Origin: Oikopleura dioica | Lineage: Eukaryota; Animalia; Chordata | Assembly: GCA_907165135.1 (NCBI GenBank) | Contig: OU015568.1 | Coordinates: forward strand, 10,168,001 to 10,232,000 | Length of the DNA stretch: 64,000 nucleotides | Reading direction: 5' to 3' | Part shown: piece after piece, positions 27,804-32,052 of the stretch | How the letters are laid out: the number at the start of each line of letters is the position of its first letter | Numbering within the stretch: the first letter of the stretch is position 1 | Notes under the pieces: generated by a model | The model's input: the letters and a program-made list of their open reading frames with translations, nothing else | Database searches by the model: none | Told to the model about the DNA's origin: nothing | Made by a program: the position numbers and the translations under genes

Positions 27804-28325
27804 TTATTTATCTTCAGAAACGCTGATTGTGTCACTAGAGAGTGATGGCAGTTTGATCGCCTTCAATTTCTTCTTTCTCGACTTGAGAAACGTTTTTTCG
27901 AATGAACTTGGTTTTATGGTTTGATTTGGACAGTCTTTCGCCATCTTTTTATATACGAGTTCGAGCTTCTTTAGGCTTTGAGATATTTCTGACTCCTTGG
28001 TTCTTTGCTTTTGAATGGTTCTCAATAGAAATTTAATACTGATACTTTTATTTGATTGAATAACCTTAGCTTCTCATGAAGACTTTTGATTGTTTCGAAT
28101 ATGCCGATTTCTTCATCTCCCAGCTTGTCTATTTCTGTCTATTTTTGGAATTTTTACGCTTAGTGAAAAGAATTTTGAGACTCGTAAATAATGCTCTTCC
28201 TGCAAATCTGTAATTTCTTTTTCGAACTTTTTCTTCTCGATAACTTCAAGCTTCGTTTTCGCATCCATAATTTTCTTTTCGGACTCCTCGATAATTTTTC
28301 TCAAATTTTCTTCCTCCGAATTCAT
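27804..28325 (-). CDS. Small Lys/Glu-rich coiled-coil protein, unknown family
   Basis: MNSEEENLRKIIEESEKKIMDAKTKLEVIEKKK, continued through short introns into LGDEEIGIFETIKSLHEKL and TIQKQRTKESEISQSLKKLE. Confidence 0.5.
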
Positions 28326-28752: not shown

Positions 28753-30778
28753 CTAGTGCGGAGCAACAGGACATGTAATTATTCCACCGTAGCCTTCTAA
28801 TTCATCCAATGCCGGGCAATGCGAGTTTTCTGATTTGACATTCCATGCCAAACCACCGCCTTCGGGAGTAAGGATGTACCACCCAGTTCCATATACGCTG
28901 TAGCTGCCATATTTGATCGTGAAGATGCGTTGACCTTCTTTCACCTTTTCCTGAATGTACTCGACGTTTCCAGACGAGTCGCGGAAGACTTTATTCTTAT
29001 TTGGGTCGCTAGCATCGGTTTCCATGCGAATAGAGAAAATACCAGCGTAGGGCATAGTAGACTCGAGCATCAATTTCGAGCAGCAGACTCCATGCGAATG
29101 ATTGTTCACAAGATTTTTCGCTATGAAAATTATTGAAGAGTCTTTTTTCATTCAAACTTACCTTTTTCAACTTTTCTAAAGTCGACGCAATCCTTGCAAT
29201 CACAATGGTCTTTTGTTATGCCGCAGTAGCCGTTAGGACTGCAACAGGGGCCATTGTGTGGTTTTTGTATCGTCCAGTCGGCCTCAGTGGTACTGCATCC
29301 TGTATTGTTCCATTTCGGACCGCAGTGATGATAGTTTGGCCCAGCCAGAATCGGCGGGAGAACAGGATGGTTCTTGTGCCAGTCCTAAACGATCGATTTT
29401 GATCTGAAAATCTTGAAAAAGTACCTTTGGATTACAAAGTGGAAATTCTTCAACATATTTGTAACCATCAATTTTGCAGTCTACGTGGTGCTTCACAAAC
29501 TTCGGCCAAAGACAATCAATACTTTCGGGCGTATATTTATGGACGATCACTGAAATGAATATTTCATTTTTTGGGATTTTGAATAAAACATTACCAGTTT
29601 CAGCAACTTTACAAACATCAAATTTAAGTTCGTCACGTGGCCGAAATCCCCAAACGTGGAATCGTTTGTCAGCAAAAACGTGATCCTAGAGACCAAATAT
29701 TAAATGTAGAGAATGACAGTAATTACCTGTAGGCCAGCTCGACGCATGCACACTCCAATAAAGGCGTCGTCAATCGGGATTATTGGAGTTATTTTGATAT
29801 TTTCTTGAAGAGCAAAAATGGCTTTACGGTTCATTACCAAGCCACCTCCGGAAACGTACGGTGGGTATTTATCTTCAGGCCAAATATCATCTCCGTATTT
29901 CTTGCCAACGCCACTTTTGTCTTTTTTCACTTTCGGCTGCTGCGGCAATTTGTTCCCCCAGATTCCAGCTTCTTCGTAGTCTTTCTTCTCGTCAATAAAA
30001 TCCAACAAACCAAATGGATTCACCAGAACATCATCGTCTCCTTTGAACGCAAATTTTACATCTGGGCAGTTGTGAATCGTCCAAGTCAAAAACATTGAGT
30101 CTTTGAAAGTCAGATTGTGGAAGGAGTCCACAAAATCGCCGAATAAAATATCATCATGAAGCAATTCATCTTCCACTAGTGATGACGGGGCATCTTCGCT
30201 TGCGCCAAGCAAGAAGACGAACTTGGCATTAAAACCTTTGTACAATGAAAGTTGCCCATAACTCCTTCGAATTGCATCTCGACGGTCTTTATTTTTCAGC
30301 GAGCTTTTGAGACCAAGAACAAGGTCGGTCTTTGTAAGAGTTGTCAACGATTAAAAACATTTGACAAGGTGATAACAAACTATTAATTCTTGACTATACA
30401 AATTTCAAGCTTGGCAACTCTTTCCTTTTTAGGGATCTCTCTTGGTGAGTAGAGAATACTGAATGCAAGAGTTTTCGTAACTGGAGGATCATAAGTTCCT
30501 ACATCAACGAAGAATTTCTCAGAGCTGTCAACAAGTGGACTTTTTGGAGCGGGATACTTGTTGTATTTCACTTTGCTGTGGACGAAATTGGACGAAACAG
30601 ATTTGGAATCGCAGGGCTCATTTTCCGACCACTGCAAAATTGGCTTCGTAGATTTGAGGAGAAATAATTCTGATCTGAGAGCGATTGTGTAGTAAAGCAA
30701 TAGGAAATTCGTCGTCAAACTGGCGATCAGTAGAGGGTTTCCTGAACGTGTCTCTTTACTTGATGTTTGATTGCTCAT
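28753..30778 (-). CDS. GT31 beta-1,3-glycosyltransferase (B3GNT-like) with a C-terminal hevein-like domain and a further Cys-bounded domain
   Basis: Type II TM anchor; RRDAIRRSYG, DILFGDFVDSFHNLTFK, FKGDDDV, YPPYVSGGG, IDDAFIG, VHKYTP. In-frame GT-AG introns (29385-29424, 29121-29161) continue into CGPKWNNTGC..PCCSPNGYCGITKDHCDCKDC and then the 28753 ORF. Confidence 0.88.
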
Positions 30779-32052
30779 TTTCTCATATTTACACTGTACA
30801 TTTTTACTCTCCGTTTTTAGCGAGACACTCAAAAGATGAACAAAGACTCATAAAATCAGGCAAGCGCGGATTAGGAATCATCTAATATCCTAGAATGATT
30901 ATTTAGCTATTATAGCTAAATATGATATTAATTCATTTGTCATATCCTTAGTTTTTTGCTGTCTTGTTTCTTACCTAAAGGATTTTGAGATCTTCGCCCT
31001 GCAAGTCTCTTATACTGAGCCATAATGTTCGGCAAATCTCGATCTGGTATAAACTGCTTCTCTCTAGCAACGCTTATCGGATGAATTCAGACGCAGGAGC
31101 CACTAACAGGCATTGTAGGATTTAGTAGACATTGCTTTGGTAATGTTTGTCAATGTGTCAAATCGCCTGGGCCCTATGAGCTCTTTGTGTGAACTTTGTT
31201 AGTCACAAACTCAAATTCTTCACTCGCCTCAGGCACTGGCAACGTGCCTGTCAAGCCCCATCAAATGCGGAAGTAACGCTCTCCTTTGTTTTCTCGTTTT
31301 TACGAAAAAATTGTGAACTGGCAGGTGTCCGTGATTTGGCTTATAAATGTATTCAACCATGCTTAGACGATAGATTGATCGCGTGAATGGCCATTTTTCT
31401 CTGAGGAATCTGGGATAATCGAAAGCCCCCTTTCTTCTATTGCAGAGCTCGAATCATTGCTTAGGGAGGAGTGAATTATGCAGTCGTCTACAGATGAATG
31501 CGGTGACGATCTCGGACCGACCTGCAAAATTAAAGGGCCCGTACAGGACAATGGAGACAAAGGGGATGAATTATTCCAACAGATGTGTAGATTGTGCGGT
31601 GTAGTTTTTCAATAATAAAAGCCATAATTTGTTACTTATAGTCTGATTACTTATTCAAAGCACTTATATATCGAAGTAAAGTAAAAATTAGGACGCTATA
31701 ATGATTCTGATAATTAAGTTGTATAAAATAATGTCATGCTCGTACGAGGCGACTTCACAAACTACGAACGAAAACTTTGTATCCGAAAGAGAGGTGGGGC
31801 TTGGAAATAATTTAATTGAGAGAATTATCCTGTTTTCTTACTGCCAAAGAACGTCTGTGTGCTCTGTGCCTGTCTTTTAACAAACTCCAAGATAAATTCT
31901 TACATTTTTCTTGAAAGTATCTTTTTATCTACCCTCGTGCAGTCACCGTTTATGGGCTGCAAAAATAAGACACAATAGTTCAGTCAACAGAATTACCTCG
32001 AAGGACGGCCCGAAAGATATTCAGAGAAACCCGCCCATGACTCCAATTGCAC

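Follow-up and report, generated by a model that had tools for sequence, protein, structure and literature searches.

Does a GT31 glycosyltransferase of the larvacean Oikopleura dioica carry, within one polypeptide, a hevein-like module and a further domain of its own, and what could such an appendage contribute to the enzyme? The question is raised by a stretch of 64,000 nucleotides (GenBank assembly GCA_907165135.1, contig OU015568.1, positions 10,168,001 to 10,232,000 of the forward strand), here called the window. An earlier reading of its letters, referred to below as the original prediction, had described such a fusion and had taken the module to bind oligomers of N-acetylglucosamine (GlcNAc). 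The present analysis indicates that the three-part fusion is very probably real. The explanation that accounts best for the evidence, and that is favoured with moderate confidence, is a type II Golgi-type GT31 beta-1,3-glycosyltransferase with two luminal C-terminal modules, which would form a putative glycan- or substrate-binding appendage.

Three-frame reading and tests of splice combinations resolve window positions 31023-28753 (minus strand) into one gene of seven exons with about 593 coding codons. The encoded protein would consist, in order, of a short basic tail, a membrane anchor, a stem, the GT31 catalytic domain, a 74-residue cysteine-rich module and a 121-residue domain, called domain 3 here. 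The features of the gene, in window coordinates, are as follows.

31023-30975, minus strand: exon 0, with the ATG at 31023, the basic cytoplasmic tail MAQYKRLAGRRSQNPL and the first base of a Gly codon; donor TAG/GTAAGA.
30741-30419 (or 30425), minus strand: exon 1, type II anchor LLIASLTTNFLLLYYTIAL and stem; acceptor TTCAG/GAA before 30741.
30329-29727, minus strand: exon 2, GT31 catalytic core with the DDD (DxD) and PIDDAF motifs.
29685-29595, minus strand: exon 3, GT31 fold continued, DHVFADKRFHVWGF...
29549-29425, minus strand: exon 4, end of GT31, VIVHKYTPESIDCLWPKF..., with a short Cys-bearing tail.
29384-29162, minus strand: exon 5, a linker, then the eight-Cys hevein-like module HHCGPKWNNTGC...CCSPNGYCGITKDHCDCKDCVDF.
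29120-28756, minus strand, with a TAG stop at 28755-28753: exon 6, domain 3, 121 residues.
28652-28647, minus strand: AATAAA about 100 bases past the stop, a possible polyadenylation signal read from the sequence; the orthologous contig described below carries this motif about as far behind its stop.

Introns 2-5 have GT..AG ends, compatible phases and lengths of 40-45 bases. The two that flank exon 5 measure 40 bases (exon 4/5) and 41 bases (exon 5/6), so that the two in-frame canonical introns which the original prediction placed after the catalytic domain are borne out in ends, length and phase. The segment it dealt with, 28753-29384, corresponds to exons 5 and 6 plus their intron, and its roughly 120-residue CC...CP...C domain is exon 6. 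Beyond that description, the end of the GT31 domain (exons 3 and 4) proves to be split by two further introns, and the gene starts further upstream.

Support for a single gene that does not hinge on the splice model comes from comparison. A single-protein query identified the metagenome contig Ga0115008_10021924 (L017) as the same gene from a diverged lineage, with 76% nucleotide identity to the window over 2.1 kb and amino-acid identities of 80, 92, 100, 83, 93 and 90% in exons 1-6. Introns 2-5 lie at identical positions in L017 and have GT..AG ends there as well; they are diverged in sequence, with length differences of 2, 6, 0 and 3 bases. Within Oikopleura dioica, the OKI2018_I69 genome (64.28 Mb, 19 contigs) was searched with the exons one by one, yielding 9 matches to exon 5 and 41 to exon 2. 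Each of the nine exon-5-like matches (9/9) has a GT31 match upstream of it on the same strand, at a distance of a few hundred to a few thousand bases. When all exons were compared with the paralogous loci L011-L016 by tblastn, the order stem, GT31, Cys module, domain 3 was recovered.

In several cases these parts share an open reading frame (ORF). The ORF L012:2449-3036 (minus strand) joins the C-terminal half of GT31 to the Cys module in one frame, L013:5102-5569 (minus strand) joins the Cys module to domain 3 in one frame, and a single exon in both L011 and L015 covers the hevein-like module together with the opening CC of domain 3. A 274-residue environmental ORF found with the domain 3 profile (P0011, from a 1,096-base ENA contig) is uninterrupted from the C-terminal half of GT31 across the Cys module as far as the end of domain 3.

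An alternative account holds that exons 5 and 6 do not belong to the GT31 protein. In that case, read-through beyond exon 4 would terminate the enzyme, and what lies downstream would be a separate gene, an alternative isoform or a relic. The exon 4/5 and 5/6 junctions are predicted from sequence, and the read-through after exon 4 stays open for 47 codons in the window; however, this read-through tail is not conserved and hits stops in L017, where the splice sites and their phases are kept. Exon 5 cannot begin a gene of its own because no ATG lies ahead of the Cys module and a stop precedes it in frame. In the public OKI2018_I69 annotation, one paralogue does have its domain 3 listed as a gene apart, of 105 residues (CAG5103140.1), but this split falls where the paralogue is frameshifted with respect to P0011, and in P0011 and several paralogues the parts occupy one open frame. 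A downstream part independent of the enzyme is therefore highly improbable, and the fusion of GT31, hevein-like module and further domain in one gene, as first proposed for this locus, holds for the orthologue and the seven paralogues alike.

These paralogues, which have the same three parts, bring the family in OKI2018_I69 to eight genes, located on C1 at 10.20-10.47 Mb and 13.55 Mb and on C4 at 2.41-2.60 Mb. An unrooted maximum-likelihood tree of the N-terminal half of GT31 was built from the window gene, L017, the seven paralogues and ten other GT31 genes, with weaker GT31 matches left out. A branch with 100/100 support separates the nine hevein-bearing rows from the ten others. Apparently, a single fusion took place and was followed by duplication.

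Two members of the family show irregularities. In L012 (C4), comparison with P0011 places a frameshift near L012:2485, just past the Cys module, where the two tblastn pieces have 7 bases in common but are read in different frames; the region L012:2470-2500 corresponds to C4 positions ~2,593,970-2,594,000. The part downstream of it is the one annotated separately, as Oidioi.mRNA.OKI2018_I69.chr1.g635. The frameshift reflects either an indel introduced in error by the nanopore assembly or a copy that was broken recently. In L016:2830-5700 (C1 ~10,282,300-10,285,200), an intron of nearly 2.9 kb, which is very long by the standards of this genome, interrupts the hevein-like module, and the GT31 match contains an in-frame TAA. 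This locus could hold an inserted element or be a decaying copy.

The 5' end of the gene also gains definition from the orthologue. L017 has a mini-exon, MALHKRISGRRSHSPLG, with the donor TGG/GTAAGT, that matches exon 0 of the window, and the same acceptor before the anchor; its next exon, which matches exon 1, is without an ATG. Since L017 supplies its ATG from this conserved mini-exon and has none in the exon that follows, the true start is probably the exon 0 ATG at 31023, and the in-frame ATG at 30778 (MSNQTSSKETRS...) is probably intronic, within the first intron (30742-30974). The exon 1/2 junction reads AAG/GTGAGC in L017, whereas the window has AAG/GAAAGA with a weak GT 6 bases downstream. 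The 3' end of exon 1 may thus be formed either by a GA-AG intron (30425) or by the weak GT donor (30419). Non-canonical introns have been reported for Oikopleura dioica. The hydrophobic stretch in exon 1 comprises 19 residues and is followed by the stem; read by eye together with the basic tail of exon 0, it gives the predicted protein the type II membrane topology of GT31 enzymes.

The catalytic domain itself is readily assigned. Exon 2 matches Pfam PF01762 (Galactosyl_T) with an expectation value (E) of 2.6e-33 and 115.9 bits against a cut-off of 23, over profile positions 1-189 of 195. It also aligns with human B3GNT2 (E 1.2e-26) and B3GALT5 (E 1.6e-23) in PDB entries 7jhk, 6wmm and 8zwp, with the DDD and IDD motifs in register. 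Specifically, KGDDDVLVN is matched by KGDDDVFVN, and PIDDAF by PIDDVY, of human B3GNT2, in which the Asp of IDD is the catalytic base. Because the DxD motif and the Asp aligned to the B3GNT2 IDD are retained, the domain is predicted to be active, as a beta-1,3-transferase of the secretory pathway. The alignment of exon 2 stops at residue 345 of the 397-residue B3GNT2 chain (8sz3), and the 72 residues of exons 3-4, including the string VIVHKY, cover the remainder of that fold. As exons 3-4 complete the GT31 fold, exons 5-6 represent about 196 extra residues, in agreement with the proposed extension beyond the normal end of B3GNT enzymes.

The first of the two extra modules, encoded by exon 5, has the cysteine pattern C-x8-C-x17-CC-S-x2-G-x-C-G-x5-C-x-C-x2-C. 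All eight Cys and the core CCS-x2-G-x-CG-x5-C are present, with V replacing G after the fifth Cys in some paralogues. The only Pfam family matched is PF00187 (Chitin_bind_1), with E 1.1e-4, and in 3 of 8 paralogues this family is matched at E below 1. A sequence search of the PDB returned eight matches, all of the hevein type: six are vaccatide, pokeweed lectins C, D and D2, wheat-germ agglutinin and morintide, and two are entries of amphioxus PGRP3. Ac-AMP2 also appears among the hevein-type PDB matches of the sequence or profile searches. A profile of the eight paralogues found the amphioxus PGRP3 hevein-like domain (4z8i) as its best PDB match (E 0.011), through an ungapped alignment of 23 columns, CCSEWGWCGRETSHCTCSSCVDY against CCSPNGYCGITKDHCDCKDCVDF. 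The two have their second halves spaced identically, as CC-x5-C-x6-C-x-C-x2-C followed by VD-Y/F. In the ESM Atlas, the three nearest clusters all belong to PF00187 (0.86-0.88, with 186-189 shared features).

Whether the resemblance reflects descent can be weighed against the alternative of a separate small disulfide knot that is unrelated to hevein and shares the CCS-xxG-xCG string by chance. The PF00187 score of exon 5, 22.8 bits, stays below the gathering cut-off of 27.8, and the PDB E-values are marginal throughout (0.011-1.5). The loop between Cys2 and Cys3 has 17 residues (11-13 in paralogues L011 and L015), three to four times the hevein length; in hevein, this loop is short, with 4-5 residues according to the PROSITE pattern. 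AlphaFold2 run on an alignment of eight sequences gave a predicted local distance difference test score (pLDDT) of 41.8 and a model that is of no use for judging the hevein fold and its 1-4, 2-5, 3-6, 7-8 disulfide pairing. A PF00187 scan of the whole genome found no domain above the cut-off and a sole match, exon 5, at 20.5 bits, so that one exon only reaches 20 bits with this family. Against a chance likeness stand the four kinds of search covering Pfam, the PDB and the ESM Atlas, which point to hevein and to no other Cys-rich family. The eight Cys are complete, and the C-x8-C start matches hevein. Additionally, the second-half spacing is that of a structurally proven hevein-like domain from another invertebrate chordate. 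Taken together, the evidence makes the Cys module a probable divergent homologue of hevein, and an origin outside the hevein group is unlikely. The module is not filed as a member of CBM18, since the cut-off, the loop length and the binding residues all depart from that family; of the hevein/CBM18 pattern originally recognized, the eight Cys and the CCS core stand, and full membership does not.

As the genome scan with PF00187 matched exon 5 alone, Oikopleura dioica seems to have no hevein-like modules other than those of the GT31 family. Word-based protein searches, restricted by a length window and by the requirement for exact words, gave no candidates with exon 5 and 91 candidates with P0011, 0 of them significant; given these restrictions, neither blank is informative. 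Genome matches to Pfam Chitin_synth_2 were considered as a sign of chitin and set aside: E. coli and Lactococcus controls match the family too, and it does not separate chitin synthases from cellulose synthases.

What the module might bind can be approached through its binding face. The positions of hevein S19, W21, W23 and Y30 are occupied by S, N, Y and H in the window, as first read, and L017 is identical. In the paralogues they are S, N/E/A, Y/F/H and H/D/N, respectively. With N and H in place of W21 and Y30, the first aromatic is absent from the whole family and the third position is never aromatic. An N-x-S/T sequon just before Cys2 is conserved across copies, a feature consistent with a domain that is luminal and N-glycosylated. 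The insert between Cys2 and Cys3 contains a conserved (E/D)DW across copies, and it is a matter of speculation that this Trp substitutes for the lost binding Trp.

The closest structural reference for this face is the domain of amphioxus BbtPGRP3, whose crystal structure shows a hevein fold with four disulfides and which binds chitin (PMC4610682). A W53A/W55A double mutant showed in binding assays that both Trp play a part in recognising chitin, and the domain enhances the activity of its partner enzyme (PMC4610682). The positions aligned with W53 and W55 are Asn and Tyr in the window. Because one of the three aromatic stacking residues is left, binding of chitin or GlcNAc oligomers is doubtful, in this copy and across the family, and the binding activity that had been read from the pattern does not follow from it.

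The second extra module, domain 3, has about 115-120 residues and four Cys. According to alignments A2 and A4, it has a CC near its start, an invariant Trp in G-W-Y/H-I and a terminal C-P-x(7-13)-G-x(3-10)-C. A joint alignment of domains 2 and 3 (A3), in which the CC of domain 3 was placed on the CCS of domain 2, was discarded. Pfam gave no credible match for the window copy or for 14 aligned members, and PDB searches by sequence or profile returned nothing meaningful. A HMMER profile compared with 1.84 billion representative proteins yielded ten matches, six of which are Oikopleura-type ORFs of exon size (85-123 residues), and no clear relative outside Oikopleura-like sequences was found in that set. 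The other four (P0006, P0007, P0008 and P0010) are long bacterial proteins with tandem repeats, which were rejected: they cover only ~30-45 of 94 profile positions, and their scores (E 1e-7 to 5e-4) arise from repetition. Three of them, P0007, P0008 and P0010, match the CP...G...C end; the repeat of P0008 reads ...TGYTFVSITGDAKCPAVLGGTVTLDEGDDITC... This is probably a chance similarity of a disulfide-closed hairpin.

Among the cluster representatives covered by the profile search, no Oikopleura-type match exceeded 123 residues and none was an annotated full-length protein with domain 3. This cautiously suggests that public gene models omit domain 3 from the full-length GT31. AlphaFold2 modelled domain 3 from eight sequences as strand-rich, with a pLDDT of 50.6. 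Comparison of this model with 48,161 PDB representatives gave nothing above Z 3.8 and no recognisable fold, and the ESM Atlas returned unnamed clusters only (0.84-0.85). At this model quality, the failed fold search is best taken as carrying no information and not as a sign of a new fold.

Selection on both modules was assessed by Nei-Gojobori counting of the proportions of synonymous (pS) and nonsynonymous (pN) differences between the window and L017. Synonymous sites are saturated, with pS of 0.69-0.80 (0.80 in exon 3, 0.72 in exon 4 and 0.69 in exon 5), and pN in exons 3-6 is 0.00, 0.08, 0.03 and 0.06. These values indicate that both extra modules are under strong purifying selection.

In the proposed mechanism, the type II anchor would place the GT31 catalytic domain and both modules on the luminal (Golgi-type) side. 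As an appendage that binds glycans or substrates, the C-terminal pair would there keep the enzyme on particular secretory substrates that already carry glycans. It may act in the manner of the lectin domain of the polypeptide N-acetylgalactosaminyltransferases (ppGalNAc-transferases), or in that of the amphioxus hevein-like domain that enhances its partner enzyme. A role in targeting of the lectin type is a plausible hypothesis. Classical chitin is probably not the ligand, since the aromatic platform is reduced to a single Tyr.

The main alternative accepts the architecture and denies that the modules are lectins: they would have a structural role in oligomerisation, Golgi retention, partner binding, or the folding and stability of the catalytic domain. 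The loss of two of the three aromatic stacking residues in every family member speaks for it, together with the mutagenesis of amphioxus PGRP3, in which those aromatic positions take part in chitin recognition (PMC4610682). Moreover, canonical hevein domains, which would point to a functioning set of chitin-binding proteins, are missing from the genome, and domain 3 resembles no known carbohydrate-binding fold. On the other side, the core of exon 5 is very strongly constrained, as its low pN indicates, and the Ser and one aromatic of the binding face are kept along with the (E/D)DW of the insert, which fits a ligand surface without proving it. A purely structural role is possible and rather unlikely; compared with it, the two alternatives considered earlier, a separate downstream part and an unrelated knot, are minor.

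The appendage remains the preferred explanation, with several points to be set against it. The sub-threshold Pfam score of the Cys module, its marginal PDB E-values, its long Cys2-Cys3 loop and its failed model all count here, as do the altered binding positions, judged against hevein and against amphioxus PGRP3, and the lack of a recognisable fold for domain 3. In addition, all splice junctions are predicted from conservation, and neither the donor nor the acceptor specificity of the GT31 domain can be read from its sequence.

A more far-reaching version of the appendage hypothesis would make domain 3 a new carbohydrate-binding fold that, with the re-tooled hevein knot, targets a larvacean-specific set of GT31 enzymes to the polysaccharide or the densely glycosylated proteins of the house. 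This is an improbable extension at present. If it were true, the family would be lineage-specific machinery for building the only cellulose-based animal dwelling, the filter-feeding house.

A small gene lies downstream of the GT31 gene on the same strand (window 28113-28325, minus), ~430 bases past its stop. Its product is rich in Lys and Glu and is probably a coiled-coil protein. The region is 70% identical at the nucleotide level in L017 (4625-5044), and the gene is possibly an operon partner; operons are common in Oikopleura dioica.

Few glycosyltransferases contain a lectin domain of their own, and those that do show how enzymes select their substrates, the ppGalNAc-transferases being the textbook case. 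In the family described here, a chordate GT31 enzyme appears to have gained a hevein-type knot and an orphan module, to have kept both under strong selection and to have expanded to eight genes. It provides a testable case of lectin-assisted glycosylation in an animal that secretes an elaborate house of glycoprotein and cellulose. The family also offers a set of naturally occurring hevein variants in which the binding face has been rebuilt, and an orphan domain worth a structure. No new principle is involved. Lectin or carbohydrate-binding modules are known from other transferases, and enzymes that bear hevein modules are known as well. In the literature searched, no description was found of a GT31 domain followed by a C-terminal hevein-like knot and an orphan domain and expanded in a larvacean.

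Among known systems, B3GNT2 and B3GALT5 have the same catalytic domain and are likewise laid out as type II membrane proteins. Their chains stop about 50 residues past the region aligned with exon 2, whereas the window protein adds two modules. The ppGalNAc-transferases (GT27) are Golgi type II enzymes whose C-terminal ricin-type lectin domain steers them to glycosylated acceptors. They differ from the window gene in catalytic family and in lectin fold; the likeness is one of analogy and implies no homology. Plant GT31 galactosyltransferases such as Arabidopsis GALT1 carry a galectin domain. They resemble the window gene in joining GT31 to a lectin-type domain, and they differ in the galectin fold, in its placement before the catalytic domain and in occurring in plants.

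For the Cys module, the plant hevein/CBM18 domains of wheat-germ agglutinin, pokeweed lectins and class I chitinases share the string CCS-x2-G-x-CG-x5-C, the C-x8-C start and the eight Cys. Unlike them, the window module falls below the Pfam cut-off, has the 17-residue insert and shorter last loops, and shows N, Y and H in place of W, W and Y. The domain of amphioxus BbtPGRP3 (4z8i/4zxm) differs in the spacing among the first three Cys and in keeping both Trp. It stands N-terminal to a peptidoglycan amidase, whereas the window module is C-terminal to a glycosyltransferase. In its eight Cys, its second-half spacing, its origin in an invertebrate chordate and its fusion to an enzyme, it is like the module of the Oikopleura gene.

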